From: Sphaerodactylus townsendi
Taxonomy: Eukaryota
Length of the DNA: 64,000 nucleotides
NCBI RefSeq assembly: GCF_021028975.2
Contig: NC_059425.1
Span: 27,714,001 to 27,778,000 of the forward strand
Reading direction: 5' to 3'
Shown here piece after piece: positions 29,888 to 58,721 of the stretch. A program made the position numbers and the translations under genes. The notes beneath the pieces were generated by a model. The model worked only from the letters and a program-made list of their open reading frames with translations, searched no databases and had not been told where the DNA came from. Position 1 is the first letter of the stretch; every line of letters starts with the position of its first letter.

Positions 29888-30009
29888 CTTGGTGTAGTTT
29901 GAATTGAGGGACATATCTCAAGTCTTGTCAAATCTGGAGTGCCTACTAAGTACCTGAAAATTTTCCATTCCCTGCCCTGACCTCCTCTGCCTTTTCTTCT
30001 TGGTTGCAG

Positions 30010-30125
30010 ATAGACCTCCTCCCCCCGTCAATGTAACTGTCACACAGCTCAAAGCAAATTCAGCAACTGTCTCCTGGGATGTCCCCGAGGGAGATGTCAT
30101 TATCGGCTATGCCATCTTACAGCAG
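30010..30125 (+). CDS. FNDC4: FNDC4 coding exon 2 (FN3 domain start)
   Basis: cag|..|gtaagt; (N)RPPPPVNVTVTQLKANSATVSWDVPEGDVIIGYAILQQ. Confidence 0.97.
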
Positions 30126-30355
30126 GTAAGTCTGAGACGAGCGTCACTGGTCTTTGGCTTGCACAGCATTGGCCCTTTAGGCCCCTACCTCTCTGGGCTC
30201 CCTATTTCTCCATGGCAGGACCCTGAAATCCCTGGGAGAAATCCCCCCAAACCAGGCCTCCGGTGGAAGGCTAGGAGTGGCTCCTTTTCTCCATATGGAG
30301 AGTGGCTTGCCCCTAGCCTGGCTGGCCCCTCTGATCACCTCCCTGGTTCTGGCAG

Positions 30356-30560
30356 CGGCAAGACGGACAGATGCAAAGATTCATCCGAGAGGTGAACACC
30401 ACGAACCGGGCCTGTGTGCTGTGGGACCTGGCGGAGGATGCAGACTACATCATACAAGTACAGAGTGTCGGTCTCTATGGAGAAAGCCAAGCCAGCAAGA
30501 GAGTCCATTTCCGCACCCTGAAGCAGAGCGATCGCCTCCCATCTAACAGCTCCAACCAGG
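30356..30560 (+). CDS. FNDC4: FNDC4 coding exon 3
   Basis: cag|..|gtagg; RQDGQMQRFIREVNTTNRACVLWDLAEDADYIIQVQSVGLYGESQASKRVHFRTLKQSDRLPSNSSNQ. Confidence 0.97.
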
Positions 30561-30728
30561 GTAGGCAGAGCAGAAAAAAAAAGATTCTGTCCCCTTCCCC
30601 TTTGTCTCCTCCCCAACCTGGCTGCTGTTCTTTGGAGACCTACTTTGAGCATGCAGTAAGTTTGACTTCTGAGGCGGTTCTCAGTGTGGTGGATCAGTAT
30701 CTGTAAATACATCCGTCTCACTCTATGG

Positions 30729-30915
30729 CAGTGGTTCTCAACCTGTAGGTCGGGACCCCTTTGTGGGGTCGAACGACCCTTTCTCAGGGGTCACCTAAGA
30801 CTCTCTGCATCAGTGTTCTCCATCTGTAAAATGGATAAATGTTAGGGTTGGGGGTCACCACAACATGAGGAACTGTATTAAAGGGTCCCGGCATTAGGAA
30901 GGTTGAGAACCACTG
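30729..30915. mobile_element. SPIN (Space Invaders) hAT MITE, URR1-like
   Basis: cagtggttctcaacct.. and ..ggtcaccacaacatgaggaactgtattaaagggtcccggcattaggaaggttgagaaccactg; perfect TSD ctctatgg. Confidence 0.88.
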
Positions 30916-31052
30916 CTCTATGGCATATCTCCTATTAATCCCTGGACCCATCCTGATAGGGAATAAAATCTTGAACTGCCTCCTCCTGGGGCCAGGTCTA
31001 TCATGACCTGGCAGCAATCAAGCAAGATGACGGAGAGGGTGGAGATGAGGGA

Positions 31053-31215
31053 GGGACCATGGCTCAGAGGCAGAGAATCTGTTTGGCATGCAGAAGGTCA
31101 CAGGTTCGATTCTTGGCATGGATCAGGTAACAGGCGACATGAACGATCTGTGCCTTAAATTCTGGAGAATCTATACCGGTCAGTTGATGATAGTGACCTT
31201 GACAGCTAGTCAGTA
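31053..31215 (+). mobile_element. tRNA-derived SINE with CR1-like tail
   Basis: tggctcagaggcagag..caggttcgattcttggc head; related copies about 17251-17460, 38690-38865 (-), 44555-44735. Confidence 0.65.
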
Positions 31216-31383
31216 CAAGGGAGGGAGGGAGGGAGGGGTGCTGTTTTTCCAAGTGTGTGAATATTTTGTGCCCCGTCCCCCTCCAAGCTTCAGAACTGAG
31301 CACCAGAATGGTAAATAAGTTTCACAAGTGAACTTCAGCGAGTCTTAGCTCCATCTCAGCCATGTGTCTTTGCATCCATACAG

Positions 31384-31473
31384 GAGACATCACTGTGGAG
31401 GGGTTGGACAAAGAACGCCAGTTGCAGACAGGGGAGATTATCATCATTGTGGTGGTGCTGCTCATGTGGGCAG
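31384..31473 (+). CDS. FNDC4: FNDC4 coding exon 4 (transmembrane start)
   Basis: cag|..|gtgagt; GDITVEGLDKERQLQTGEIIIIVVVLLMWA. Confidence 0.96.
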
Positions 31474-31724
31474 GTGAGTTAGCTGGACAGCTGTTCTCCA
31501 CACTATAGAGATGAACTTCCCCAAAGGGAGTGGCAGCTTGGGAGACCGGGAGAGAAGGGACTATCTTGGATAACATCCCAAGCTCCCTTCCCTCCCCCAA
31601 ACTCAACACTCCCCAGCTATCACCCCCAGATCTTCAGGAATTTCTCAAGCCAGAGTTGGCAACCCTAACTGTAGTGGGCCACAGCCTATCCAATCACTCA
31701 CTTTTCTGCTTTTCTGGTGCTGAA

Positions 31725-32100
31725 GCAATCAAGGTATTAGAATTGGCTGAAATGACCAAGTTAACTTTGCTACTTAAAGTAAAGAACTTAAGTTCATGGA
31801 CCACCGGAAACCCTTGATAGAATGTCTAGATAAAATAGAAGAAAAACCCCCAACAAATTGATGACTAGTGTTTTTGAAGATTAAGAATTGTTAAATTAAG
31901 ATCTAATAGAGAAAAGTGAGACATTTATTAGTAATGATGCTAAAGATTTAATTTCATTTTGATGCTTAATGATCAAGTGCTGAAAGTGAAGGGTTTAAAA
32001 GGGTTAATATTTGGTGTAGAAGAAACTGGAAGTTTATATAAAATAAATACTGTATAATTTGGTGAACTTCTGTTTTTGTGCATGACTTTGATTTCGAAGT
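31725..32100 (+). mobile_element. L1/Tx1-type LINE 3' relic
   Basis: KVLELAEMTKLTLLLK followed by AT-rich 3' UTR-like sequence. Confidence 0.5.
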
Positions 32101-32313
32101 ACAACTTGTGTTTTTTTATAAAAAGCACGTAGCGGGTGTTTAGAAGCCTCTTGCGCACAGGGCACCAAGTTTGCAGGCAGGCGCAAATATGGCGGATCCT
32201 CTGATAAGAGGCTGAGAAGAGAGATGATTGGGGGGAGGTAACAATTAGCCAGGCAAGGTAGTTAAGCGATGCTGTCTTTTTCTCCCCCACCCACCTCTCT
32301 GGTGACATCCTAG

Positions 32314-32447
32314 CGGTCATTGCGCTCTTTTGCAAACAATATGACATCATCAAGGACAACGATTCCAACAATAACAAGGAGAAGACCAAGCCTTCTTCAG
32401 AACACAGCACTCCAGAGCGGCCCACCGGGGGCCTCCTGCGCAGCAAG
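32314..32447 (+). CDS. FNDC4: FNDC4 coding exon 5 (TM end, cytoplasmic tail)
   Basis: tag|..|gtgagt; AVIALFCKQYDIIKDNDSNNNKEKTKPSSEHSTPERPTGGLLRSK. Confidence 0.96.
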
Positions 32448-32694
32448 GTGAGTGTGCCCCCAGGGGTGGAGAGGGGCGGACAAAGGCTAGATTGGGCAGT
32501 ATGAAGCAGAAGCACTGCCCTGCACACAATACTTATTTTTTGTTGAAGGAATACTTATTCTTTATTTACACAATTTATATTCCAGCTTCTCACCCAGTCA
32601 GGGCCCTCAAGGTGGCTAATGAATAAGAACAAAACTTTATGAAAACACATCCTTAAAACCATTAAAATCCAAACTAAAATATGCATGTGTGTAA

Positions 32695-40442: not shown

Positions 40443-41630
40443 ATTTGAATCATCTGACAACAGACGTAGGGATCCTCAGCCCTGTGCAAAAGGCCTTGAG
40501 CAGAGACCACAGCCCTCCACTCCTGGAAGATGACCATCAGAAGTGAACGCAGGTTGCTTCATGCCCAGGCCGTTTTGTGCACTCCGGTGATCTAGGGCAG
40601 GTGAAGTCCTTGAGGTCTTTTATCAAGTCAACCATTAGGCTATCTAGCTCACTGCTTATTCTGACTGGTGTCTGTTCTTCAGGGTCTCACACAGAGAAAA
40701 GGTCCTTCCTTACCCTGACTGCCTTCTGCTTGCCAGCTCTGGGCGCCATTGTTGGACCATGGCCTTCTCCTCAAAGCCGCTTACAGAGGAAGTTACCGTA
40801 TTCCTGGCTGCCATTGCCGCTCATCTACCGAGCTCCACAATGCTCTCGAATCCTGTGATTGTGAGGAAAATCACTCCTTGAAAAGCCACAGTGCCAGCAC
40901 TCAGGAATCCTGGGCACTGTGGCTAGCTCAGGAGGACCTCTTCCCAAGTAACTAATACCCAATATGAAAGAAATAAACAGGGGATGGGGAACTGCCTTTC
41001 TTGGTCCCCTGATTCCAAGTGTGCCACTCCCAAATGGCCAAATCTGTTTGGTTAGCCTCCCTGCTTCTTCCTTGGACCAGCCTACTCTTGCTGGGACCAC
41101 TCAGTAGCACTCCCTCCTCTCTCAAGGCTCCATGATATACCAAGCTGCCCCAGGCCAGTAACTTCTTGAGAACCTCTTTGCTGGGAGTGGAGGACCTCAC
41201 ACTACCACCACTATTCCATCAGAAGAGGAAGAGTTTGGATTTATACCCCGCCTTTCTCTCCTGTAAGGAGACCCAACATGGCTTCCAAACTCCTTCCCCT
41301 CTCCACAATAGACACCTTGTGAGGCAGGTGGGGCTGAGAGAGTTCAGAGAGAACTGTGACTGGCCCAAGGTCATCCAGCAGGCTTCATGTGGGGGAGCAG
41401 GGAAACAAATCCAGTTCACCAGATAAAAAGCCCACTGCTCTTAACCACGACACCATGCTGTCTCTCAAAAGGGTGGGAGAAGAGAGATGAGGGAAGAAGA
41501 GAGAACCTACATGAGCCAGTCCAGTGGAAACTGAGTCCTATGAGCTGGGGAGACCGATGCTTGTCCTCACTCACCAATCTGGACTGAGGGTGCTGCAAGA
41601 AATGGCGCCAAAATACAACAGTACAAATTG

Positions 41631-42117: not shown

Positions 42118-42298
42118 TCAGCTGGTCCTTTGTGTGCTACAGAAGAGTGGTGCTGGAGATGGCGAAGATGGCGGTGTCAGAGTCCAAGTTAGAAAAGCAT
42201 CCCTGGGGGCAGGTGGCTGTTGGGGTGGCCACTTCCCATCGTCGCCTCCGACTGGAACTGTGTGACTGGGGAGCTCCCGAAAGCAACGCAGCCCACAT
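42118..42298 (-). CDS. LDLRAP1-like adaptor, putative terminal coding exon 8
   Basis: Acceptor ctgtgtttcag; a phase-2 join gives GCGLRCFRELPSHTV..STQRTS*; no recognisable ARH homology, supported only by splice signal, phase and downstream polyA signal. Confidence 0.45.
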
Positions 42299-42781
42299 CT
42301 GAAACACAGGCGGGCAGAAGCAGAGGGACTGAGAAGAGTGACACGGGGTGGGGAGGAGCACACCAAGGGGTGGGAAAAATGGGGAAATCAAGAACCCCAA
42401 AAGCTCGGTTACCTGTCGCAGAGCAGCCACCTTCTTCTGTGAAACTTGGGGCAGAGAAAAAGAGACGTGTCAGAGCAAGAGAAGCAGAGCCTTCCCCCCC
42501 CCCCACACACACACACAAACGCCAAGGAGCTGGGTGACCTCTCATTCCCACCACAATCCTGCAGCCATGACTGAACTCCCTCCTTGCCATCCGCTCTTTT
42601 ATTTATTTAGATATTTATATCCTGCTTTTCTTCCCAGTGGGGGCTCAAAGCAGTGTACATCATCCTCTCCTCCTCTTTTCCATCCGTTCCACAATCACCG
42701 TCTGAGGTAGGCTAGGCCAAGAGAAAGTGAATGGCCAGCCAAGCAAGCAGCCATGGCAGAGCACTGTGGCCTCTCACCTAC

Positions 42782-42840
42782 CCAGAAAAGGAGTCGGGGA
42801 GATCGCTTTCCTCCTCTTCTTCTTCCTCCTCATCCTCCTC
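42782..42840 (-). CDS. LDLRAP1-like exon 7 (acidic)
   Basis: tag|..|gtaggt; EEDEEEEEEEESDLPDSFS(G), phase 0 to 2, like the ARH exon ELDDGLDEAFS(R). Confidence 0.7.
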
Positions 42841-42966
42841 CTAGCACCAGAGAAGAAGAACATGTGGTTGCAGCCCCCGGCCTCCTCTGAAGGCCTCCAG
42901 AATTCACTGCCTCCAAGGCCTGGGAGAGGGAAGGCCTCACAGCCCCAGTCCCCTCAGCCCTACTTC

Positions 42967-43067
42967 CAGTGATGTGATTCCAATAATTTAACAACCGGTT
43001 GTTTACAAGCACCATTTTAACAACCGGTTCTGCCGAAGTGGTGCGAACCTACTGAATCCCACCACTG
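42967..43067. mobile_element. Short hAT MITE
   Basis: cagtgatgtgattc..gaatcccaccactg; perfect TSD cctacttc. Confidence 0.85.
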
Positions 43068-43177
43068 CCTACTTCCCAGGGGGCAGCAACACGCCAGGAG
43101 GGAGGAGTGCACACTCGCCAGCACACAGCAGCTTAGTTAGGGACCAAAGGGGAAGGGGCCTTTGCCCAACACCATAC

Positions 43178-43281
43178 CTCAAAGTTTGTCTTAAAGGGGG
43201 GACTGCCCATGGGTGACCTGACTGGCTGGCAGGTACTTTCCACAGGGCACAGCATGCTCAGCGAGTGCTCTTGCCGGGAGC
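43178..43281 (-). CDS. LDLRAP1-like exon 6
   Basis: tttcag|..|gtatgg; GSRQEHSLSMLCPVESTCQPVRSPMGSPPFKTNFE; phase 1 to 0 bridges exons 5 and 7 in frame. Confidence 0.65.
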
Positions 43282-43672
43282 CTGAAACAAGATCAGGGAA
43301 AGACCAAAGGGACATCTCAGCGCTCATGTGATTGTTACAAGCTCAACTGGGGAGGGGGCTGGTCTGCTTCCCTCCCTCACCTCCTCGACAACTTCTGCCG
43401 AATCAAGAAAGAAATGCCTCTGAGCATGTCAGGAGTGCCCTCCCCTCCTCCATGTCCACCCATTTTGTGATCAGGGGGTAAAAAATTAAGCCCCTGCTTC
43501 TGTGCCTCACTTGGCCTACCTGGAAAAGGACAAACCAGGGACAGTGAGGCAGGGCAGGAGGACAGGCCCTGCAGGAAGGTTAGTGGAGTCGCTGATGCTG
43601 CACCAGGGCTCGGCCTCACCAGGGGAGAGAATGCGTGTCCCCACCCACCCAAAAAGGCAGACATGTTCCTAC

Positions 43673-43745
43673 CTGCCTGGGCAGCCTCCCAAAGATCCAG
43701 AGCTACCTGGAAGGCCTGCGCCACAGTCAGCGTCACAGCTTGGGC
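43673..43745 (-). CDS. LDLRAP1-like exon 5 (PTB C-terminal helix)
   Basis: AQAVTLTVAQAFQVALDLWEAAQA vs ARH AQAVTLTVAQAFKVAFEFWQ; 73 nt. Confidence 0.93.
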
Positions 43746-43990
43746 CTGGATGTGGGGAAAGAAAACCCATGTGCCTGAGAAGGCAGCCAACCTGGACATA
43801 TCCCTGAGACAGAATGTGGGGAGGGGGGAAAGGCAGGCAACAGACAAGGCAGAAGGCCAAGACACGGAAGCCACCCCAGGAACCAGCCAGCCTGCACTGT
43901 CTCGTCTAGGCAGCACGTGGAACCACCCCCTCTTCCTTCCCCAAGCCCCTGCAGTCCCCACAGGGGAAAGCAGTCCACAGAGGAGCTTAC

Positions 43991-44105
43991 GATCTTCTTC
44001 TTGGGTGACAGAAAAGCATGGCACTCAAGCGCACCGCTCTGCGGGTTCTGGGCCACGTAGGCAAAGACTTTGTTCTGCAGCTTGTCCGTGGTGCAATAGG
44101 AAATC
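43991..44105 (-). CDS. LDLRAP1-like exon 4 (PTB)
   Basis: ISYCTTDKLQNKVFAYVAQNPQSGALECHAFLSPKKKI vs ARH ISYCTADKMHDKVFAYIAQSQHNQSLECHAFLCTKRKM; 115 nt. Confidence 0.95.
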
Positions 44106-45080
44106 CTAGGGGGAGAGGGCAGGAAAGGTGTTCAGTGCTTCCTCTGGGCATGTTACTACAAGCAGGGGAAATGAGCAGTCCTCACCAAAAACCAGAGGAG
44201 CCTGTGAGCCGCAGGGACAGAATTTGAGAGGGGGGAGGGGTTGGGGGTGTAGCATATGAAAGAGTCCACACGCAAAAACAACAGGCTGCAAACCATCCAC
44301 AGCCAAGAGAATAGAAGCGAGCCAGAATGTATATCTCCTCTCTTCCCAACAGGTCTGGGAGCACTACAGGTGGACCAGAGGTCAGCCATGCTGCATGCAG
44401 ACAGAAAACACTTCCTTCCAAATAAAGGAGCGGTCAGATTAAACGCAAACCCAGTAGCACTTGAAAGACCAATCACGTTTACTCCAGCAGAAGCTTCGGC
44501 AGGTCAGAGCTCACTTCGCCAGATGCATCTCAGACTCACAAAAGCTGAGCAGAGGGATTGTGGGTCAGCGATAAAGCATCAGCTTAGCACACAGAAGATC
44601 CAAAATTCAATCCCTGGATCCCTCCAGTTAAAAGTATCAGGTCGTGTGAAAGGGCTGGAGAGCTGCTGCCAGTCAGAGCGGGCAATACGGACGTTGATGG
44701 ATCAAAGGTCTGATTCCATACAAGGCAGCTTCACGAGTTCAGGCCTCTGCTGGAATAAACTCTCTCTTGAAGGGGCCACAGGACTCCTGTTTAACGTTGT
44801 TAACAATAGACTAACATAACTGCCTGTCTTGAATTACTATCAGGTAGGAAGCACACACAAGGATGCCAGTCAGAGCCCCCAGATGGCTCCCTCATCTTTC
44901 TCCTCCTCAAGGAAACTCACAGCCAGGTCTGTGTGTTCTGGGCACTTCCCTTCACACCAGGCTTTAGGTTTCTACACATCAAAGTCTAAGGTTCTTTTGC
45001 ATGATTTTGAACCTGCTCAAGATCATGATGCTACAGCTGCCAGTGGTAGGTGAACCTACCTACAAGGAGAACCTGGGTGA

Positions 45081-45306
45081 NNNNNNNNNNNNNNNNNNNN
45101 NNNNNNNNNNNNNNNNNNNNNNNNNNNNNNNNNNNNNNNNNNNNNNNNNNNNNNNNNNNNNNNNNNNNNNNNNNNNNNNNNNNNNNNNNNNNNNNNNNNN
45201 NNNNNNNNNNNNNNNNNNNNNNNNNNNNNNNNNNNNNNNNNNNNNNNNNNNNNNNNNNNNNNNNNNNNNNNNNNNNNNNNNNNNNNNNNNNNNNNNNNNN
45301 NNNNNN
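45081..45306. other. Assembly gap (N run)
   Basis: 226 N. Confidence 1.
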
Positions 45307-45570
45307 TCGTCAAATCCATCCGTCCGTCCAATCCATATCCGTCCATCCAAGTCCAAAGTCCAATCCAAATCCCGTCCCGTCCGTCCAATCCAATCCGTCC
45401 ATCCAAATCCAAATCCGTCCCCGTCGTCCATCCATCCGTCAAGATCCATCCAATCCCATCCGTCCAATCCAATCCAATCCAATCCATCCGTCCGTCCGTC
45501 CATCCAAAGTCCATCCATCACCGTCATCCGTCCGATGATCCATCCAATCCATCCGTCATCCCATTCATTC
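45307..45570. repeat. Degenerate (ATCC/GTCC/AATCC)n microsatellite
   Basis: Low-complexity repeat abutting the gap. Confidence 0.9.
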
Positions 45571-45936
45571 CCCACCGTCCCAGACATTTGATCCCCGATC
45601 GAGGACTCTGGGCGGGTTACAACAAGCTTAGAACATTAAAATATGGCACTCAGCTCAAACTGGCTGAACACACCATTAACAACCAGCGGCCCATGCTGGA
45701 AAATGATGGTCTTCTCACAGTCAATGGGAGGCAAACCTTTTCTTGCCCAAAGACAGTCTCCAAACAGGGCCTGGAACAAACCAAAATCTGTCCTCATATC
45801 CACTCATTCACTTGTTCATTTGCCAATGTTATACAGGCTGTCCAATGTCAGCAGTGCCCTTCCACTCGAACACTGCCTGCCCACCCCACCTGCAACACTT
45901 TTCCCACAGCGCATGCCCTCTTCTCTGGTGCCTCAC

Positions 45937-46049
45937 CTGTAGATGGAGACATTTTCAATGGTCTCCTTTGTCTCGGCATCCTGTAGAGAAAGGCCCCGGG
46001 GCGACACAGTCAGAATCACCTTCTGGAACTTCTTCGGTCCCACCCGAGC
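45937..46049 (-). CDS. LDLRAP1-like exon 3 (PTB)
   Basis: ARVGPKKFQKVILTVSPRGLSLQDAETKETIENVSIY(R) vs ARH AKASGKKLQKVTLKVSPRGIILTDNLTNQLIENVSIYR; 113 nt. Confidence 0.95.
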
Positions 46050-46484
46050 CTAAAGACAGGGAGAAGCAGCAGGGGAAGAGAGATGGGGGCCATGTGCTCA
46101 CCAGCATTTCCCCTCACCAGTGATTCTAGCAACCAGCTGAAGTACATAATTTTCATGGCAGAGGAAGGTAGGGTGGGTGTGAGGACTGCTTCCTTCTCTC
46201 AGCAGGCAGCCACCTGACACCAGGCACTTTCTGGAGGTGACATCAGGCATCCAAACTTCCCAACAGTGTCCTGAAAAAGCTATCATCAACCTCCCCACTC
46301 CAGTCACACTGACTCTCCGCGCTTGTTCTCCCTACAAACCAGTGCTCAGAATGTCACAGAAGACTTGCCAAATGCTAACAGAGGAGGGGCGGGCAGAGAG
46401 GCAAAGGGGAAGGCTTTCCTTGGCCTGCTTTAGTCCAAGTTGTGCTTCATTTGCCTGGCTCTCTTCTAGGCAGCCACAACCTAC

Positions 46485-46627
46485 CATGGTAATGATCCGG
46501 TGAATGGCTGCAGTCGCCATATCCTCCCCTTTAGGTTTCTCCACCAACGTCATGCCCAAGTACTTGAGCGCAAACCCCATGCCCTCCAGAAGGGGCTCGC
46601 GCATGTCAGCCCAGGTCTCTGGCAGTT
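46485..46627 (-). CDS. LDLRAP1-like exon 2 (PTB start)
   Basis: QLPETWADMREPLLEGMGFALKYLGMTLVEKPKGEDMATAAIHRIITM vs ARH KLPENWTDTRETLLEGMLFSLKYLGMTLVEQPKGEELSAAAIKRIVAT; 143 nt. Confidence 0.95.
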
Positions 46628-47220
46628 CTGCAACAGAAGGTTAACCGAGGGAAGAGGGGCACAAGAAATGCCTTTTGGTACAGTGCTATACTTATTAATT
46701 TACATATTTATACCCTGCTTTCCACCCAATGGGAACCCTAAACTGCTTATGACAGAAGTCTCCAACATGACAATCTTCAACCAGAGGTGAAAATTGGGGG
46801 GCAGAGGGAACAGTATAAAACTAGAGGCGGACAGGCTCTGTACTCAGTTTGAGCCTGGTCTCACCCAGGCTTGGATTCAGCTCTAAGCTGCAGGCTGGAA
46901 GCAAACAGGCCCGTGTTGTTTGGGTGTCCGAAACTCCACATGGAGATGGGGGTGGAGCAATCCCTGCTCAGTAGTGCTCAACTGTGCCCTTATCCTGAAT
47001 GGGACAGGGGCGCAGTTGGAGGGGAGAATGCAGCACCTGAGGGGAAATTCCCGACACCGTTTTAAGTAGCTACGTCCTATGCAGAAGCCATTTTGTGGTT
47101 GCCCCTGCCTCTCTTGGCAGCCATTTTGTGGCTGCAGTGCACCCACCATATTGTGGCTGATCCTGCCGTGAACAGGGGTTAGACTAAATGGCCAGTACTG
47201 CCCTATCCAACTTTATGATT

Positions 47221-47520
47221 CTAAATAGATGTTTCTTGTAGAATAATAATTCCATAGTCATGTTGGAAGAATGGGACATCTTGATAGGTATATAGACAAC
47301 AGTTCCACCCTGCCACATTCCATGAGATGATTTCAAGGGATTTCAAATAGATGAATACATAAATTTCTGAAACTCTTGTCCATATCAGCACGGTTTCACT
47401 GTCGTGAGCATGCCATTTTTCCCACTGGGCCATCTGAGGGCATTTGGCCAGTTTTAAAAAAATCTGTAGTTACTAGAAGCATATCACTACAGCATTAGGT
47501 CACAACTACCCTTTTAAAAG
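47221..47520 (-). mobile_element. LINE AP-endonuclease N-terminal relic (L1/Tx1-like)
   Basis: LEIISWNVAG..GIIILQET motif. Confidence 0.65.
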
Positions 47521-49656
47521 CCTGCAAAAAGCCCTTGGGCAAAACTGGGCTGGGGAAGGCAAATGAAGAAGAGGAGTTTGGATTTATAACCTGCCTTTCT
47601 CTCCTGTAAGGAGACTCAAAGGGGCTTACAAGCTCCTTGCCCTTCCTCTCGCCACAACATACACTTTGTGAGCTAGTTGGGGCTGAGAGAGTTCAGACAG
47701 AACTGTGACTAGGCCAAGATCACCCGGCCGGCTTCATGTGTAGGAGCGGGGAAACAAATCTGTTTCAACAAATAACAGTCTGCCGCTTATGCAGAGAAGT
47801 AGGGAATCAAACTTGGTACTCCAGATTAGAGTCCACCTGCTCTTAACCACTACACCACACTGGCTCTCATGGTAGAAGGCCAAATAAAGTTGTTAGAACT
47901 GCCACATAGTTGCTTCATGGCCACTATAAATGTCTCTGCACTTAGAACATGAAAGAGTTCAACACAGAATCTCCACTGTGTGGATGCAGCCTTCATGTTT
48001 CATCAATATTTAAACAGAACTTCTTCCAAGTCTGTCTCTTTGGTGAAGTTTAAGTAAATTCTACCTTGTTTCCCAGGGGAAAAAAATTATTTGTTTCCAT
48101 CAGGGAACAATTAACTGCTCAGTGGTTCCTTCTCTCTGCCCCTCTTATCCTTCAGTTCTTCCTGAGAGTAAGTGTGCATGATGCTCTTTTGCTGAATGTG
48201 GGACACAAACGCCTCATGCCGCCTTCTGTATCTGTGTCAGGCTGGATTCCCTTTACCTGGGCTCCCTGCTGCCACACACATTCCATGTGAGACATAAATA
48301 TTCATGGCCCAGAATGAGGACAGCCCTGATTTCTGGGGCAGGCAATTTCCAGACTCTGAAAGGAGACTTTCAGAGAATCAGCAGCAGCCCCAACACTCAG
48401 CTCATAAAGCCTTGGGGCACAGAGTGAACAGAAGGGAGAGCCAGCCTATACAACAGCAGACCAGGGCCTTGTGGGATCTGGCTCAGTTCCTCAGGGTCTG
48501 CCTGCAAGATGGATATGTTCTGCCAGGCACATGATTGAGGACTTCTGGCAGCGCTGTTACATCCATGGGGCACTGGGGAGAGCCCCCCCCTCTATGCCCC
48601 CTCCTCACTTTTTGGAGTGTTGCTATTCTCATGAGTTTGCTCTGCTGAGCATTTAGGGCACCATCTTATTCGTATTTTATGGATTTTAATCTATTCTATT
48701 TTTTCTCTTTTAAAATGTATTTGATGTGTTGTTTCCTGCCCCGAGCCCCCTTTAGTGGAGGAGGGATGAGATATGAATTTAAAATATAAATACCTAAACA
48801 CCTAGGGGACAAATCCTGGGAATCAGTTTTCTAGCATATTAATATTAATAATGTTATGAATATAGCACTATCACAGTGCACAGTGCTTCTGTATAGCAAT
48901 TATCTCCCTTGCAATTCCACCCCTAAGCCAGTCTGTTGTTTGACTTGCCACATGTAAGATCACAAACAGAAACACAAGAAGATCCCCTTCAGCAATCATC
49001 TACTCCTTTCCGGCACTCTGTTTTATCTCTGTTCCCCTGAGAAACCCTACCTGTAGACTGAGGAAGCTGCCTTCTGCCTATTCAGGTGATGGGGCAGCTA
49101 TCCCCCAGTGGGCGACCCAATATTCCCAGTTCCATTGGGTCTGCCTTCCTGGAGTCCACGTTAAAGGGGAGGGGGGAGAATGAAAGAAGGATACAGGTGT
49201 GGACATAGGAACACCCATCAGGTTGAATACCTGGCTAGGGTGATGCCTCTCTTGGCAAGGCTCCCGCCCGTCAGGCACCCATCGGCTCACCCCCTTCTCC
49301 AACATGTCCAAGAGGTTGAAGTCGGAAGGGGGGTTCAACAGGTACCCAACCGGCAGGTCTGATTGGAGGAGGTCATCTCAGCAGAGCCCAGTCTGAACAG
49401 CCCCCCTCCCCGAGTAGCTGAGCAACAAAGAGAAGGAGGAGGAGAAGGGACTCGGCGGAGCGACCCCCTTCATGCAGCCCCATGCACATTCCCTAGGCAG
49501 AGACCCGTGGGGCGCGCTCCGGAGGATGCTGCTGGCTCAGCATCCCGTTTCCCAACAACCGTTCCAGCATCCCATGATCACCAGCCTCCCTCCGGACGGG
49601 AACTGTGGATCCGGGGAAAGAGCGGATCGGCTCTGCTCCCACCCGTATTAACTCAC

Positions 49657-49753
49657 GCTGCCGGTGCCGGCGAAGGCGGGAGACGCCCAGGCGATGCCGA
49701 GCCAGGCTGGGGCTCCTGAGCACAGCCCGTCCCGCAGCCCGCAGCGCCTCCAT
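49657..49753 (-). CDS. LDLRAP1-like (low density lipoprotein receptor adapter protein 1-like) exon 1, start codon
   Basis: MEALRAAGRAVLRSPSLARHRLGVSRLRRHRQ vs ARH MDALKSAGRALIRSPSLAKQSWGGGGRHR; donor gtgagt, phase 1. Confidence 0.93.
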
Positions 49754-50034
49754 CGGGGAAACCAAGGGAAGAGAGGGACCAGACGGTTGGGCGGAGCCTC
49801 GACTGAGCGGGCGGGGCTTGCCCAGGAAGGGCGGGGCTTTGCCTGGCTCCGTCGCCAACTCTCCTCCTCAGCTTCGAGCGCTACGACTGCGCATGGCCGT
49901 CTAACCAAGCTCCTAGTCCCGCCCCTCCTTCCGCGCGTCGCCGTCGCTGTCCTCAGCGGCGGCCTGTTCCCGGTGGCTGTTGCCTAGGTAACGGGCGCGG
50001 ACGCGACGCGGACCTCGAGCGCCTTGATCGGGCC
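49754..50034. promoter_or_regulatory. Bidirectional CpG-island promoter (LDLRAP1-like / IFT172)
   Basis: 281 bp between divergent ATGs; CpG-rich; GC boxes near 49789, 49809, 49828; TGCGCATG near 49889. Confidence 0.85.
49979..49992. promoter_or_regulatory. RFX X-box
   Basis: GTTGCCTAGGTAAC fits the palindromic X-box consensus, 42 bp before the ATG of a core ciliary gene. Confidence 0.8.
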
Positions 50035-50073
50035 ATGCCTCTGAGGCACGTCCGGACTCTGCTCACCCCGCAG
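50035..50073 (+). CDS. IFT172: Intraflagellar transport protein 172, exon 1
   Basis: gccATG; MPLRHVRTLLTPQ vs human MHLKHLRTLLSPQ; donor gtgaga. Confidence 0.93.
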
Positions 50074-50119
50074 GTGAGAACCGGCGAGCCGGGAAATGCT
50101 GTTCACACGAGCTATAGGT

Positions 50120-50526
50120 CAGGGATGGCGAACCTTTTCGAGACCGAGTGCCCAAACTGCAACCCAAAACCCACTTATTTATCGCCAAGTGCCAACACTG
50201 CAATTTAACTTGAATACTGAGGTTTTGGTTTAGAAAAACGGTTGGCTCAGAGGCGCACGTTACTCGGGAGTAAGCTTGGTGAAGCAACCATGCAACGCTT
50301 CGAATGGGTGAATCACGATCCTAGGAGTGTTTACTCAGAAGAAACCCCATTGCCAGCAACCGAGCTTACTCCCAGGTAAGGATCGTGCCCAGGCCAGCCT
50401 AGATGTGTGTGTGGGGGGGTGGGGGTGATTTTCCGCCCCCCCCCCCATGAACTGTGTGCACGTGTGCCCACAGAAAGGGGTCTGAGTGCCACCTCTGGCA
50501 CCCGTGCCATAGGTTCACCACCGCTG
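50120..50526. mobile_element. Non-autonomous hAT transposon in IFT172 intron 1
   Basis: cagggatggcgaacct..aggttcaccaccgctg; TSD ctataggt/ctataggg. Confidence 0.85.
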
Positions 50527-51218
50527 CTATAGGGGGTCAAACCGAAGTAGAAGCGGAGTTACAATGGGGTTGCACGTGTGAGGAATAGGCTGTCTGTGCA
50601 GTCTCTTCTGAGTGGGGCAACAACATGAATTGGAACGGCTTGGAAACGAAGACAGACCAGTTTTTCAGGAGACCGGTGGTATCTTAACCACTACCAACAT
50701 CTGCCATGAGATTTCGTGAGCCACAACTCGCTTCTGTGGGTGCTGTATGGGAGGAACTAATTTTGCAGACTTTTATAAGGAAAATTACAGAAGAACCATC
50801 CCTTCTGTAAGAGTCACACACCAAAGAAGAAGTTAGAATAGGGTTGGATAGAGAAGGGCTAAATTTGAATCCTGTCATAAATCTTCCAGGTGTGATTCTT
50901 TGTATAAGGATCTGAAATGGATTAGGTTGCTACGTGTAATGGGTAGTGAAGTCAGAGATTCCAGCCTCCCTGTCATGACATACAAACAAACATAACTTGA
51001 AGTTGAAAGGGTGTCCCAGGTTTCTCCGAGAAACCATTAAGCAACTGCCTGCAATACAAACATCAAAAATGAATGTGATAATCCATAATCTCAGCCAGTT
51101 AACTTAATCCTCGGATGTGCTGCTGTCCAACCCATGTTTGAAGAAGCTGGGGTTTCTGATGGGCCGCAGTAGGCCCATGCCCCTAAACTGTGTGATCATT
51201 ATCCTACTTTTTTTGCAG

Positions 51219-51362
51219 GAGGGGGCAGCCAAAGTAACATGCATGGCCTGGGCCCCAAACAATTCAAAATTTGCTGTCTGCACTGTGGACAAAGTGGTTC
51301 TGCTATATGATGAACATGGCGAACGGAGGGACAAGTTCTCCACGAAACCTGCAGATCCAAAG
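51219..51362 (+). CDS. IFT172: IFT172 exon 2
   Basis: [48 protein letters not shown]; ag/gt, 144 nt. Confidence 0.97.
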
Positions 51363-51866
51363 GTAGACCCCAGTTGCTTCCTGAACTCTAGGGAGTGGGT
51401 TGTTCCCTTCCTATTTGGCCTCACAAAGAAAGTAGTCGTGAGTCAAGAGTGCATCACAACTGTCCCGCTTGAGAGTTGACTGGCATCTCCCAGTACTGAA
51501 TTTTGTGCCAGATATCAAACTTTGCACTTTTGGCTGCGTACACATAAACTAATAGTAATAACTACAACCAGGATGTGTATACTGCCATATAATAATGGAA
51601 AGGGGCTAATCGTTTTATCGTTATTAGGGGAATATGAGTGAAGGAGAATCTTGCTCTGTTGTACTTGAGAAGGCTTCACCTTTCAAGGGCAGACCATGGT
51701 CAAGGATCCACAAACTTTGGCAGACTATGGCAATTTCTGCCTGTTTCTGGGCTGGAATATGTCTTACCATTGACTCTGCCTCCACAAGAGTGGAGGGATT
51801 GCCTGCCATTATCCTGAGTTTTGGAGCTGGCTTTCCTGCCTTTATCTTCACTTTCTTTCTTTCCAG

Positions 51867-51979
51867 TATGGCAGGAAAAGCTATGTGGTGAAAGGCATGG
51901 CATTTTCCCCAGATTCCACCAGTATTGCTATTGGGCAAACCGATAACATCATCTTTGTCTACAAGATTGGAGAGGAATG
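51867..51979 (+). CDS. IFT172: IFT172 exon 3
   Basis: [37 protein letters not shown](W); 113 nt. Confidence 0.96.
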
Positions 51980-52416
51980 GTAAGGGCCTTTATATGGGGA
52001 GGGTGGGCCATTGCAGGAGCAAGCACCAGGCTGAGTTCCTACGATAGGCCCCTGCTGATTGGGTTGCTGCTGTGTCTCCACTCCAGATCTAACTCTGGTT
52101 GAAAGGCATGTAGACTTGGTCTTCATTCCTGTCTCTTTCAAATCTCCTGAGAGATCATGTGGTTCATTCTGCTTTTTCAGATTGCTAATGGGTTAAACAT
52201 GCCCAGTCACAGATCTCCCACATCTCAGCTAATTTTCAGCTTTGGGGTGTAGTCAGGCCCTGTAGATACACAAAAGTGATGCCTTTCCATGGGCAAGGAC
52301 AAGCTGAACTCAATCAGCATTGTTTCCTCTAGTGGGAATCCCTGGGTACCCCTGTATCCCCATAGAACCTTTCCTGGTGACCTATGGCAACAATACTCTT
52401 TTTCCCTGTTGTGCAG

Positions 52417-52456
52417 GGGTGATAAGAAGGTGATCTGCAACAAGTTCATTCAGACG
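52417..52456 (+). CDS. IFT172: IFT172 exon 4
   Basis: GDKKVICNKFIQT; cag|..|gtaag, 40 nt. Confidence 0.95.
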
Positions 52457-53085
52457 GTAAGACCTAGTCCTGTTAGAACTGGTAGCTTTTGCTGTGATGT
52501 CTGGGTCTCTTTAGAGCAGGGGTTTTCATCATGGCGTTTGGGGCACCACAATCTTTCTCGGCACCTACCAAGTGTTTTTAGAAAGTGGATGGGGTCAGGT
52601 GAAGTCCTGCCCAGTGGAGCTTCTGATTGCCCATTTGAGAGCTTATTGGCGGTATAGATTACACTATTTCAATGATAGCTGCAACCTCAGTTTCACTTCA
52701 GTTTTTCTTTCTCTGACACCTCTATCTCAGTGTATCTTCAAAATTTGCTCCTCTTATCTGCTGCACTTTAACTTCCTTTGTGTGTGTGTGTGGTTGGTTC
52801 TGCCCCTCACATGGCCACTTTGTGGCTGTGCCCACAACCCTGTGTCAGAATGGTCTAGGGCCTTCATGACTGCCTGTCCCGTTATGTCCCCCTAAGAAGC
52901 CCATGTTCCAGTGTGGAAAACCTCCTGGGTCCCTAGCCAAAAGTCAGTCCATCTATCTTGAACTAGGGCCAGGGACTTCTTGGCTGTGGACCCTGCCTGC
53001 TAGAGTGCTCTGCCTGAGGAGACCAGAGCCCCGTGAGATATCTCCAATTCCTCATAGTTTGTAAAGCAAAGTTGTTCTGCTAGTT

Positions 53086-53259
53086 GGTTGTGGTGGGTTT
53101 TCCGGGCTGTGTGGCCGTGGTCTAGTAGATCTTGTTCCTAACGTTTCGCCTGCATCTTCAGAGGTGTATCACAGAGGGAAGTCTGTTACACACGGCCACA
53201 CAGCCCGGAAAACCCACCACAAACAGTTGAATCTGGCTGTGAAAGCCTTCGACAATACA
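53086..53259. mobile_element. Penelope-like element remnant (internally deleted)
   Basis: Inverted arms ggttttccgggctgtgtggccg / cggccacacagcccggaaaacc; tail gaaagccttcgacaataca. Confidence 0.7.
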
Positions 53260-53924
53260 TTGTTCTACCAGACTTACAGTTGAGGGCAGCAATGGTTTAT
53301 ATTCCCTCTTTATTTGTAATCCGGGACTGATTGGAGTTTTAAATTATATTTTATCATACTTGTAAAATTGTATGTTATTGTATTTACAGTGTTTTAAAAT
53401 GGTTCTTATAGTATTTATTGTTTTAAATTAATTGTTATTAGCCACTCTGAGCCCACTTTGTGGTGGGAAGGTGAGATATAAATTGAAATGAATAAAACAA
53501 GCAAATAAATGAATTCAAAAGTTGCCACAGACTCAAAAGTTTGTAGATCTCTGCTTTAGAGCCTAGTTTTCTGCTGCCTCCTCTCCATGTTTCTCTATAA
53601 ATGAGATTCAGCATTCTGGCAGTGGGCTGATGGCCATCTGGTTTATTTAATCTTCCCAAGAACATTGTTTGAGGGGAGGGAAGGGGAGCATCAGCACTGG
53701 GCAAAGCAAAGTCGCAGTGAGCTGGGCAGAATAACTCAACTCGAATCTCATGTCCTTTGGAGGGAATGTGGGAATAAGGGTGAAAACCAGACTCCAGTTC
53801 TTAGAGAGGACAGTAATTTTTGAGCCCCATCAAAAAACAAGCTACATCGTCATCTACCTCATGTCAGATCAAGCAATGCTTCTCTGATGTTTCTGCTGAT
53901 TATTCTTATTCTGTTCGCCAACAG

Positions 53925-53990
53925 AGTGCTGTGACTTGTTTGCTGTGGCCAGAGGAGAACACCATAGTCTTTGGGCTCGTTGAGGGCAAG
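53925..53990 (+). CDS. IFT172: IFT172 exon 5
   Basis: SAVTCLLWPEENTIVFGLVEGK; 66 nt. Confidence 0.95.
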
Positions 53991-54176
53991 GTAGGAAAAA
54001 TGCTGTCCGCTTCTGGTGCTGAGTTGAGTGCTGGGATCAAGCACTGTCAGATGCTTACACCACGTGGTCTGTCTCAGCTGGCTGGTGCCCTCAAGACTCC
54101 CCCCAGCTTGATGTGACCAGAAGTGCCTTCTTGCCAACACAGGGTGATGAGTTGATCAGATTTTTCTCTCCCGAAG

Positions 54177-54256
54177 GTTCGTCTAGCAAACACCAAATCC
54201 AGCAAGTCATCCACGATTTATGGGACAGACTCCTATGTGGTATCATTAACCTCCAA
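54177..54256 (+). CDS. IFT172: IFT172 exon 6
   Basis: [26 protein letters not shown](N); 80 nt. Confidence 0.95.
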
Positions 54257-54503
54257 GTGAGTGTGCTACAGCGGGAAGAGAGAATCTCACTTCACTACCA
54301 TCTCTTTGCCCTCCCCAGGAATGGCAAGCTCTATTTTTTCACCTACTGACTTCATATCAGTGGAATGACCTTAACATGCCTTTTTGTTGTATCTCATTCA
54401 TTCTGTTACTCTGCTCTGTTACTACTACTTCTTCCTGCATTCTTGTCCTCCATCAACCCATCCCAGCTAGAAGGCTGTGAATATGAGGCCTCTCTGCTGA
54501 TAA

Positions 54504-54632
<129 letters not shown>

Positions 54633-54637
54633 TAAGC

Positions 54638-54747
54638 CAGTGGTGGTGAACCTATGGCACTCCAGATGTCCAATTGGCCATGCTGGCAGGGGCTGTTGGG
54701 AATTGTAGTCCATGAACATCTGGAGTGCCATAAGTTTGCCACCACGG
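54638..54747. mobile_element. hAT MITE, left arm partly deleted
   Basis: cagtggtggtgaacctatggcactcc; perfect TSD gtctaagc. Confidence 0.85.
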
Positions 54748-56196
54748 GTCTAAGCAGCCTCTTTCTCCAGTCCAGTCAGAGCCACAAAGTAGCTGGGTGG
54801 TTTGTTTGGTTTTTTACATTCTGGTTGTTTCCATAGGGAAATATTGGCATGTTTGCTTCCATTCCCAGGAGTCATAATTTCCCGTGCTAAGTGGAGTTTC
54901 TGGGAAACAGTGATTGTTTCTTCAGCAAGCACATCAGCTGCATGTGGGGTACAGGCTTTAGAAGAGCACCATTTATATGAAGCCTGTGAGGTCACTGGTC
55001 TGAGTGACAGAGTCCCTCACGTTCCCTACGTGCTTCATCTTGTGCCTCGCAAGGTGGGGGGGGGTGTGTGGAGTAATATTTTTCCATTAGCATGCTTTTA
55101 AATTCTGCAGAGGTGGAGTATTTCTCTATCGTAAAAGTCAGGTAGCTCTTTAAATAAAACTGGTTGTGGGGATACTCTCCCCTTCACCAGTACTGAGTTG
55201 TATTATGCTTTTTTCATTTCTCTCCCACAAATCCCCCCCACCCCACACAACCTCTGGAGGCAGTGTGCTTCCTCACTGTCCTGTAAGATGACACTTTCTA
55301 AAAAAGGATGTCATACAAGATGTTTGTGCAGCTAGAAATGTCTCACACAAACCCATCAAAAAGTTGTAAGTCTGTTTCTTCTGCAGCTTTCTCACTGGAT
55401 GGCTAGCTAATGATCTCAAGCGTATGGCTTCAGTCCTACAGAACAAAGCATTTTTCCACTGCAGTCAGGGTGGGAAGGAAAGTATGGTCCTCAGCAAGTT
55501 TGCAGAACTGTTTATTACAGAGGAGGCAGTTAATGCTAAGGTTATGGGCCCAGAGGGCAAACAACCTGTAAGGGAACTGGGTAATGAGTAAGAATATGAA
55601 TATTTTTTTCTTCTAAGCTTTTTTGGTTAGTAGCATTACCCACAACAGTTTAGCCACAAGAAGCCCCAATGGAAATCAGACCATGGATATTTCCCAGGGG
55701 AGATGAGCCCTCATACTGCTAACACCTCCTGATTTGTCTGGTTTTAAAGTGGCAGCTCTGTCCCAGATAATTGTCCTGTGGTTACACAGAATACTATTTG
55801 GAAGGGGAATAATCTTGTTTGAAATTCTTATCAATGCCAACGGCTGGGAAAAGTTGGGGGGATAATCACTGTCTGAAACAATGCATTTACAGTGTCCTGT
55901 TGCATCTTTCCTGGCACCGATCCCATTCATTTGCAGTATGAGATCAGGGTACACGATAGAAAGGGAACCTTTGATCTGCCATTTGGGAGCAGGGTCCAGC
56001 TGTGACCCTTGACTGAGCCTTGCAGTTGTAAAATAGTCTCAGCTTAATGTTGCTGTTGCCCAAAACAAAATGATACAACAGCCTGCAGCGTCTGTGGAGC
56101 AAATGCTCATTTGGAGAAATACTGGGCACAATCTTAGCTGGCTGCTGTATGGCTTGGTCCCTGCCTCCTGCCCCACTGTCCCTGCTTTATCCACAG

Positions 56197-56411
56197 GGCA
56201 AATTGGTGATGCATCCCTGTCCCCCTTATGCCTTGGCATGGGCATCTAACAGTATTGTGGCTGCTGGCTGTGACAAGAAGATTGTGGCCTACGGGAAGGA
56301 GGGGCATGTGATCCAAACCTTTGACTACAGCCGAGACTCTTCAGAGAAAGAGTTCATGGTAGCAGCTGCCAACCCTGGGGGACAATCTGTGGTAATCGGC
56401 AGCTTTGACAG
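56197..56411 (+). CDS. IFT172: IFT172 exon 8
   Basis: [43 protein letters not shown](R); 215 nt. Confidence 0.96.
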
Positions 56412-56501
56412 GTGTGTTTTGGGGGGGAGGTACTGTTCCACAGGGCAACCCTGCTCCCTGTTTTCCCGCTTGGTTATTCAGTCCTCCATCTGTTCCTGCA
56501 G

Positions 56502-56625
56502 GCTTAGGGTTCTGAACTGGAGTCCCCGTCGGAGTGCCTGGGAAGAAGCCAAACCCAAAGAGATCCCTCACCTGTACACGATCACAGCCCTGGCGTGGAA
56601 GCGGGATGGCTCACGGCTCTGCGCG
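56502..56625 (+). CDS. IFT172: IFT172 exon 9
   Basis: [41 protein letters not shown]; 124 nt. Confidence 0.96.
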
Positions 56626-56790
56626 GTGTGTATAACACTTGCGTGGCAGCCTTTTGTGGCTTGATTGTGCCTGATTTTTGTGGCGGCCCCCGTGAGTCCT
56701 TCCATACCAGATAGGTGGCCAAAGAGCAGGCTTGGCAGGTTTGAAGGCTGGCCAGGGGCTGCAGAAGAGGTAGGAGGTCTTGTTTGATGA

Positions 56791-56976
<186 letters not shown>

Positions 56977-57293
56977 TAAAACCATTTATTAAAACATTAG
57001 AAAAGACAGCACCATGCAATGAACCTAAGAAATTAGCAGCAGAATAAAATGTCTGCGGATGGAAGGGATGTTCCTGTAGAATGAAAAATCATAGAGCTGG
57101 AAGGGACCATACAGGCCATCTAGTTCAACCTTCTGCTCAATGCAGGATCCCTGACAGGTGTGTGTCCAGCTGCTGCTTGAAGACTGCAAGTGAAGGGGAG
57201 CTCATAACCTCCCTATATTGGCAAGTAACAGCAGTGTATAGGCAGATACAGAACAGCAACGATGCATTTTCCTCCATCTCCCTCTCCCCACAG

Positions 57294-57455
57294 GTCATTG
57301 TGAAGAATCTGTCCACAGGGACGCGAGTGGTGTTGAAATCCCACTATGGCTATGAAATCGATGAGGTGAAAATCTTGGGGAAGGACCGCTACCTTGTAGC
57401 CCACACCTCAGACACCCTGCTTCTGGGAGACCTCGGTTCCATCAAGCTTAGCGAG
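57294..57455 (+). CDS. IFT172: IFT172 exon 11 (gene continues beyond right edge)
   Basis: [54 protein letters not shown]; 162 nt. Confidence 0.96.
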
Positions 57456-58721
57456 GTACTGCACGATGCCTGTGGGAACCTGGGGAGCTCAGCTTGGCAA
57501 TTCAGTGTTCAAAGGCAAAAGGGGGTGCAATTGGCTCAAGTGGCACCTGGATTGCCTAGCAGTGCTTGGGTGTCCTGAGGCTCAAATCAGTGGAGACAAT
57601 TTGACCAGACCAGAGTAACTGAGCCAAGATAATTGACCTTCAGCAAGCAAAGCTCTGTGCAGAAGCTCTTTGCATGGTGTGTTCTTCTGATGTTGTTTTT
57701 CCTTTCACACTCTCCTGGGGGCACCTCTCTGTTCCCAGTCATTTCCCACTGAACTGTTGCAGCAGATGTAGGCTTTTTTTAGCGGCACTTCAGTGCCTCC
57801 AGGTCCATTAATTCTGGTTCTGTTCTTCTTCAGGCTGTTTCCTCAGCCTCCATGTTCTGATTGGCTAACGTCCTTGTTCATGCTATGCCCTCTGGCTTTC
57901 AGAAGGGGAGCATGCATCTCTCTTTGTCTCTCAGCCCATCCCAGATTTGTGTTGCTTAGATCAGTTTTTGCTACTTCTGTATGAGAACAATTTCTGATTC
58001 CAGAAACAAAGAGATCGGGTTGTTCTGGGCACAGCTTTGCAGGGGCCACACATGTAGGCCGCAAAAGTCATAGGAAGTGTCTGTGTTCCTCTGCTGTGAC
58101 TCTAATGGGATGTTTTACTCCTGCATCCAGTTCAAGAATCTGAACAGTTCTGTTTAAAACCTCTACCAGCAAATATCCTAAGAATTTATGTATTAAAGGC
58201 CACTGATCAACCTTTAAATCAGATCATACAAACAAAATAATTGTGAGTTCTGTTCTTTGAACATAAAACAGCAAACCAGGCTGAAAACCCTTCAGAGAGT
58301 TTATCTGTTTAAGAAAAAAGAAATAATTATCTTTATTAGGCAAGATATTAGAAAACACAAGCACGTGAAAACTAACCCTTATAGCTATTGTAAAAACAAG
58401 TGCTAAGCTTATGAAAGTTCCTGACGCTTCTTAATTATATCATAGTAAGTAATATTTTGAAGCAAACCAGGTTTCAGATTACTGTATTAACATTGCTTAT
58501 AGGGATTTTTGTATAATCCCAAATCACACACACAGGCTGAGAAATCTTAACTAATCTTCTTATGGGACTTCCACCCACAGAAATAGGATTATGGCAAAGC
58601 ATTTTTACAGAAAAATATCCATCTTATCGTGCTCTAAATCTCTTCTGTTTTAATCATGTGATTATTATCTAGATAACTGATTCGTTCTTAGCAGGTGCAT
58701 ATATGCATTCATCCGATATGT

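Follow-up and report, generated by a model that had tools for sequence, protein, structure and literature searches.

Introduction

ARH (LDLRAP1), which serves the low-density lipoprotein (LDL) receptor, is the textbook example of a cargo-specific clathrin adaptor, and because mammals have a single LDLRAP1/ARH gene, work on ARH assumes that there is only one. Most other vertebrates, zebrafish, relatives of Xenopus and chicken among them, appear to have a second, strongly conserved and unstudied ARH-type gene, which could confound ldlrap1 knock-out and knock-down phenotypes in fish, frog and bird models. In ARH, the PTB domain binds FxNPxY tails as well as phosphoinositides, and the tail of the protein binds clathrin and AP-2 (PMC12771596; PMC3338440). 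Here we analyze a gene of the second type in the lizard Sphaerodactylus townsendi, located on the minus strand at 49753-42118 of a 64,000-nucleotide (nt) stretch of DNA that we refer to as the window (NCBI RefSeq assembly GCF_021028975.2, contig NC_059425.1, positions 27,714,001 to 27,778,000 of the forward strand). An earlier note, made from the letters of this DNA alone, had described the gene as an LDLRAP1 paralog.

The ARH-like gene resembles LDLRAP1 in its N-terminal leader, its PTB domain, its nine coding exons (counting a micro-exon) and an acidic ...D-L-x-[ED]-x-F-S tail segment at the place of the AP-2 motif. It differs from LDLRAP1 in belonging to a separate clade and lying at another locus, between IFT172 and FNDC4, in having no LLDLE-type clathrin box and another C-terminus, and in a terminal exon that can be read in two frames; in squamates, neither isoform of the paralog has the Fxx[FL]xxxR motif. 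GULP1/CED-6, Numb and Dab1/2 share the PTB fold family and the presumed FxNPxY/phosphoinositide binding mode (PMC3338440), but they are far more distant in sequence (E = 1e-18 and weaker, against 1e-53 for ARH) and have other tails and other sizes. Taking the evidence as a whole, we give a probability of about 0.75 to the explanation that the gene in the window is intact, of the expressed type and codes for a second ARH-family adaptor. Since the gene is already present in RefSeq and Ensembl, its existence is not new and the value of the discovery lies in the interpretation; what may be new are the switch of frame by the micro-exon and the disappearance of the AP-2 arm from squamates.

The window gene is intact and encodes an ARH-type PTB domain

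The earlier note had proposed eight spliceable exons encoding about 294 residues without a stop or frameshift. All eight are present with canonical AG/GT borders and join into 882 nt, or 294 codons; with an additional micro-exon, the join comprises nine exons, 840 nt and 280 codons (coordinates in Table 1). The gene is closest to its gecko orthologs, with 98-100% amino acid identity in exons 1-5 and a synonymous divergence (dS) of 0.42; compared to the Eublepharis ortholog, identity amounts to 100% over 31 residues in exon 1, 98% in exon 2 and 100% in exon 3. Being intron-bearing and selectively constrained, it is not a retrocopy, in agreement with the earlier note, and its exon sizes and phases are presumably equal to those of human LDLRAP1. 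An assembly gap lies inside intron 3 (45936-44106), which measures 1831 nt including the estimated gap; the corresponding introns of the gecko and python loci are 966 and 973 nt long. The end of exon 3 (...VSIY+AG) joins the start of exon 4 (G+ISYCTT) to form an in-frame Arg codon, and the two exons abut in all orthologous proteins with zero residues between them, so the gap has removed no coding sequence. A degenerate ATCCA/GTCC-type tandem array at 45313-45558 directly adjoins the gap and is probably its cause.

To characterize the encoded protein, the window exons were searched singly, with close orthologs (Eublepharis and others) standing in for the whole protein in the tree and in the comparison with PDB structures. 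The exon pieces matched the Pfam PID/PTB families and the PTB structure of rat ARH, 3SO6 (E = 5.6e-10 for exon 2), whereas exons 1, 2 and 5, which are too short, gave zero Pfam matches individually. The gecko ortholog aligned with 3SO6 without gaps over residues 46-177 (E = 9e-54), GULP1 following at 7e-18. Upstream of the PTB domain, exon 1 begins MEALRAAGRAVLRSPS... and matches the leader M-[DE]-A-L-x-x-A-G-R-A, the same as in the LDLRAP1 rows of the alignment. By its leader and its ARH-type PTB domain, both of which the earlier note had read from exons 1-5, the window gene is confirmed as a member of the ARH/LDLRAP1 family of PTB adaptors. When the paralog and LDLRAP1 clades described below are compared, 82 of the 178 alignment columns carry the same residue in both at a conservation of 90% or more, and fixed differences were seen at only 8 of the 178 columns, most of them conservative. 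Because the PTB domain is nearly unchanged, the paralog has likely retained binding to FxNPxY tails and to phosphatidylinositol 4,5-bisphosphate (PtdIns(4,5)P2).

The gene belongs to an old paralog clade of bony vertebrates

When representative proteins were searched with exon 2, one group of matches lay at 79-95% identity and a second near 70%. The closer group consists of proteins that RefSeq names 'low density lipoprotein receptor adapter protein 1-like', from snakes, lizards, geckos, amphisbaenians, turtles and many birds, the label that the earlier note had expected annotation pipelines to give; it also holds frog and caecilian genes named '1-B-like' or '1-like'. The same diagnostic residues (GEDMA, KKKIAQ, VALDLWE) are carried by ray-finned-fish proteins that UniProt and Ensembl name si:dkey-71h2.2. 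The group near 70% comprises the true tetrapod LDLRAP1 and the 'ldlrap1b' of fishes and sharks. Both genes were found, on different contigs, in Liasis, Rhineura, Pogona, Anolis sagrei and Eudromia. Two of the proteins chosen as cluster representatives, P0002 and P0011 (from Podarcis and a bird), are RefSeq isoforms that skip exon 3 or use another acceptor, placing exons 4-5 out of frame, and their choice makes the family look more divergent than it really is. No paper found in our literature search describes the gene, as LDLRAP1-like or as si:dkey-71h2.2, and the earlier note likewise knew of no functional characterisation.

To place the gene, a tree was computed with IQ-TREE under LG+C20 from 66 rows and 178 columns covering the N-terminus and the PTB domain, and rooted on tunicates. 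The sauropsid '1-like' genes, the amphibian genes and the ray-finned si:dkey-71h2.2 genes formed one clade with a support of 100/99, in which the branching agrees with the species tree, from fish to caecilian, frogs, and turtles and birds together with squamates. LDLRAP1, the 1b genes and the teleost 1a genes fell outside this clade. By this tree, the window gene is the sauropsid ortholog of the amphibian '1-B-like' and ray-finned si:dkey-71h2.2 genes, and a paralog of LDLRAP1 that, as a minimum age, was already present in the common ancestor of bony vertebrates. The fish and amphibian genes share with it the diagnostic residues, the layout of micro-exon and terminal exon and, in fugu, a convergent neighbor of FNDC4 type; they differ in the skip isoform, which in fish and caecilians keeps the full AP-2 motif (FSRLAESR and similar), whereas the skip frame of the window, FSG-CGLRC..., is not conserved. 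Members of the clade from cartilaginous fish, coelacanth, lungfish or mammals were not seen among the matches listed (the best 120 matches and 150 representatives), which says little given that these lists are dominated by birds and teleosts. The human FNDC4 and IFT172 genes are adjacent to one another, and the gene may have been lost in mammals.

The earlier note had further inferred that this second ARH gene stems from the early vertebrate genome duplications (2R) and was kept in reptiles. The ancient, separate paralog kept in reptiles is borne out, but dating it to 2R lies beyond the resolution of the tree: a topology compatible with 2R, which unites the LDLRAP1 genes of all gnathostomes in a single clade, was not rejected by the approximately unbiased (AU) test (p = 0.31). 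In zebrafish, ldlrap1b and fndc5a flank col6a4b on chromosome 13 (published synteny figure, PMC6934817). Because ldlrap1b thus adjoins fndc5a while the window gene adjoins FNDC4, it is plausible that the paralog arose together with the FNDC4/FNDC5 pair in the 2R duplications; two linked pairs, LDLRAP1b-FNDC5 and ARH-like-FNDC4, are as expected from a block or whole-genome duplication. A possible but unlikely alternative is a segmental duplication in which LDLRAP1 and an FNDC5-type gene were copied as a pair on the stem lineage of bony vertebrates, once cartilaginous fish had diverged. It would agree with the tunicate-rooted maximum-likelihood tree, in which shark and ray genes lie outside a 94/86 group of bony-vertebrate LDLRAP1 and paralog, and with the lack of a shark member of the paralog clade among the matches listed. 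However, the lamprey genes fall inside that group, making the rooting unreliable, the stem branch of the paralog is long while LDLRAP1 evolves very slowly, and the AU test leaves the all-gnathostome LDLRAP1 clade standing. Moreover, the paralog pairs TRIM54/63 and SLC30A3/2, shared between 2p23 and 1p36-35, point to a large-scale duplication.

A conserved micro-exon shifts the frame of the last exon

Whereas the eight exons of the earlier gene model stood, a conserved micro-exon of 32 nt between exon 7 and the last exon had been missed, so that the terminal frame was wrong for the conserved product. The gecko (L003) and python (L006) loci have this 32-nt exon too, again bordered by AG and GT, and it was found in protein models of gecko, snake, lacertid, anole and turtle. 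In the models of Eublepharis, pythons, vipers, Podarcis, Anolis and Emys, its inclusion gives a common tail of the form ...FSG-C[ML]EEGG...TT-D..., ending in LPPG[TM][LF]F or LPQGTFL. Comparing the last exon with Eublepharis, the proportions of nonsynonymous and synonymous differences (pN and pS) were 0.105 and 0.393 in the nine-exon frame and 0.168 and 0.204 in the eight-exon frame, the latter being interrupted by an in-frame stop in Eublepharis. Beyond the stop of the nine-exon frame, the tails of eight-exon models vary in sequence and length among species. Owing to the lower pN/pS against the gecko, the gecko stop in the eight-exon frame and the divergent eight-exon tails, we take the nine-exon, 280-residue form as the conserved product; the 294-residue form is probably a minor, alternative or decayed isoform.

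That the 294-residue form, with the micro-exon skipped, is instead the main functional product in this species appears quite improbable. The form has an open reading frame, can be spliced and has counterparts among the RefSeq isoforms of snakes and Podarcis, and the comparison with python does not separate the two frames. Against it stand the features just described, above all a C-terminus ...LPPG[TM][LF]F and a stop position that are common to gecko, snakes, lacertid, anole and turtles.

An AP-2 motif under proposed splicing control, decayed in squamates

We scanned the tails for the clathrin box, L[LI][DEN][LF][DE], and for the AP-2 beta2-appendage motif, [DE]n-x(1-2)-F-x-x-[FL]-x-x-x-R. The clathrin box is absent from exons 6-9 of the window in all used frames and was seen in 0 of the 21 paralog-clade proteins scanned; it is present in Lacerta LDLRAP1, bowfin 1b and cichlid 1a. 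For the AP-2 motif, the outcome depends on the micro-exon. In fish, caecilian and frog, the exon ending in ...D-x-F-S can join the last exon directly, yielding R-LA[EKT]SR (degenerate in frog), and in fish and caecilian this sequence completes the Fxx[FL]xxxR motif. Bichir, bowfin, sterlet, zebrafish and a caecilian all have skip isoforms with the complete motif. Once the micro-exon is spliced in, reading of the last exon begins one base further on, and the motif is lost. Both readings map to one and the same terminal exon (fugu L002, 26210-26271; sturgeon L007, 49086-49157; frog L001, 52363-52413), annotated isoforms use both, and each reading is conserved across distant fishes. Micro-exon and terminal exon are an old dual-coding splice switch predicted to turn the AP-2 motif on and off, and a compact case of a dual-coding terminal exon controlling a short linear motif.

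In the window, the motif is absent from both forms, which read ...DSFSG-FTEEGG... with the micro-exon and ...DSFSG-CGLRC... without it, neither having an Arg at position +7. The snake skip frame reads FSG-CREPY..., and in birds the Phe itself is replaced. An exon downstream of exon 7 that could complete the motif with 'LAxSR' was also sought, the only candidate being a chance LALTR at 42479 that has no acceptor site. Thus, in squamates including the window species, only the micro-exon form appears to be conserved and the AP-2 frame to have decayed, corresponding to the "off" state of the switch. What squamates retain is the PTB domain, the acidic run, the ...GSPPFKTNFE segment and the micro-exon C-terminus, in a protein without a canonical coat-binding motif.

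Given this pattern of conservation and decay, the most likely role of the lizard protein is that of a PTB adaptor that binds cargo but lacks canonical AP-2/clathrin coupling. Its PTB domain would still bind the FxNPxY tails of LDL-receptor-family proteins and phosphoinositides in an ARH-like manner. In fish and amphibians, skipping of the micro-exon would give an AP-2-coupled form and inclusion would uncouple it. The lizard protein may modulate or compete with ARH/Dab2-type sorting or, alternatively, link to another partner via its conserved acidic tail and C-terminus, and it would represent a natural experiment in which cargo binding is uncoupled from coat binding. A wider proposal is speculative and, on balance, improbable: an ancient micro-exon would toggle between an AP-2-coupled endocytic adaptor and an uncoupled PTB protein, the uncoupled state having been fixed in squamates and perhaps in all sauropsids, where the protein would compete for LDL-receptor-family cargo such as yolk receptors or sort it by another route, and the disappearance of the gene in mammals would track the loss of yolk uptake.

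Several points weigh against the account of an intact second ARH-family adaptor with a conserved nine-exon product. The maximum-likelihood tree places the shark 1b genes outside both bony-vertebrate clades and the lamprey inside, with weak support and very short branches, and the window protein enters that tree through its close orthologs, having no row of its own. The comparison with python shows equal conservation of both last-exon frames. Every binding property is read from sequence, and for this species the junctions between exons and the proportions of the isoforms are likewise predictions. No RNA run was found that covers the gene stretch; four candidate runs also contained the introns (share 0.73-0.98) and were rejected as DNA. 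Exon 2 had matches among short 'Logan' proteins (P0001, P0004 and others), which proved to be genomic read-throughs into introns and not spliced transcripts.

Purifying selection and conserved position

The ratio of nonsynonymous to synonymous substitution rates (dN/dS) was calculated from Nei-Gojobori counts per exon, with split codons dropped and the counts summed. Over exons 1-5 (~175 codons), it was 0.018 against Eublepharis (gecko), 0.026 against Liasis (python), 0.061 against Emys (turtle) and 0.083 against Eudromia (tinamou), far from the value near 1 that the earlier note had named as speaking against its claim. For the tail, the corresponding values were 0.12 against Eublepharis and 0.25 against Liasis, synonymous sites being saturated against Emys and Eudromia. 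The ARH-like gene is clearly functional, with strong purifying selection on its PTB part.

The placement between FNDC4 and IFT172 given in the earlier note holds, and the order recurs in other sauropsids. In Eublepharis, Liasis, Emys and Eudromia, IFT172 lies upstream of the ARH-like gene and FNDC4 downstream. The upstream neighbor in gecko and turtle encodes a 1749-residue protein with IFT172-type Pfam families, and the downstream neighbor in gecko, python and turtle a 218-219-residue fn3 protein, FNDC4. In fugu, an IBR-domain gene takes the upstream place, and the downstream neighbor is a convergent fn3 gene with 72-81% amino acid identity to lizard FNDC4 over four exons. Since the FNDC4 neighbor is kept in sauropsids and in fugu, the position beside FNDC4 is ancestral. 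Neither IFT172 nor FNDC4 was found in the 10-kb flanks of the frog (L001) and sturgeon (L007) genes.

It is very improbable that the gene is the only LDLRAP1 of its genome, moved to this place, or a recent lineage-specific duplicate: a true LDLRAP1 in addition to the paralog is documented from other sauropsids rather than from this genome, but LDLRAP1, 1b and 1a lie outside the fish-to-sauropsid clade, which refutes both ideas, five other sauropsid species have both genes, and python, turtle, bird and fugu share the position. That the copy is decaying or has no function is next to impossible as well, the faster evolution of the tail relative to the PTB domain and the missing canonical coat-binding motifs being outweighed by the dN/dS of exons 1-5, the reading frame free of stops and frameshifts, and the conserved splice sites, those of the micro-exon included.

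Neighboring genes, promoter region and repeats

The features of the window are collected in Table 1. The ARH-like gene and IFT172 are arranged head-to-head, and a CpG island, likely a bidirectional promoter of the two, spans their first exons. Gecko, turtle and tinamou resemble the window in having less than 0.6 kb between IFT172 and the ARH-like gene. In python (L006), IFT172 exon 1 lies at 4249-4341 and the ARH-like ATG at 10001, about 5.7 kb apart, so the shared-promoter arrangement is not universal.

Table 1. Coordinates of the ARH-like gene and of other features in the window.
Feature	Position	Strand	Remarks
Exon 1, coding part	49657..49753	-	97 nt; ATG 49753, the first in frame; phase 1 at its end; donor GTGAGT
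Exon 2, PTB start	46485..46627	-	143 nt
Exon 3, PTB	45937..46049	-	113 nt; Pfam PTB/PID matches
Exon 4, PTB	43991..44105	-	115 nt; Pfam PID E = 3.4e-5, above its cut-off
Exon 5, PTB end	43673..43745	-	73 nt
Exon 6, tail	43178..43281	-	104 nt; carries the conserved ...GSPPFKTNFE segment
Exon 7, tail	42782..42840	-	59 nt; acidic run and SDLPDSFS-G, first half of the former AP-2 motif
Micro-exon	42413..42444	-	32 nt; AG before, GTAAC after; inclusion shifts the last-exon frame
Last exon, conserved nine-exon frame	42192..42298	-	ends ...HLPPGMLF; stop 42194-42192
Last exon, eight-exon frame (micro-exon skipped)	42118..42298	-	stop 42120-42118
Assembly gap (N run)	45081..45306	.	inside intron 3; no coding effect seen
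CpG island	49400..50400	.	GC 0.65-0.69; CpG observed/expected 0.7-1.0
Palindromic X-box-like site (RFX X-box type), GTTGCCTAGGTAAC	49979-49992		43 nt before the IFT172 ATG
IFT172, first exons	50035..57575	+	head-to-head; ATG 50035, 281 nt from the ARH-like ATG
FNDC4, coding exons	30006..32470 (about)	+	convergent; ~9.7 kb from the ARH-like stop

In Eudromia elegans (L005), the annotation fuses the two neighbors into one model of 1937 residues with fn3 and IFT172 domains, which spans the ARH-like gene on the other strand and probably reflects an annotation error. In lizard FNDC4, the final coding segment (32262-32501, plus strand) closes with ...STPERPTGGLLRSKV; its identity to the fugu neighbor (L002, 30315-30455) is about 81%. 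We take this tail to be closer to mammalian FNDC5 than to mammalian FNDC4, and the C-terminus of mammalian FNDC4 may be derived. Finally, two same-strand interspersed copies resembling a short interspersed nuclear element (SINE), at 41222-41467 and 47565-47869, share 73-86% identity over ~250-300 nt; one of them is located within the first intron of the ARH-like gene, the other ~650 nt past its stop.

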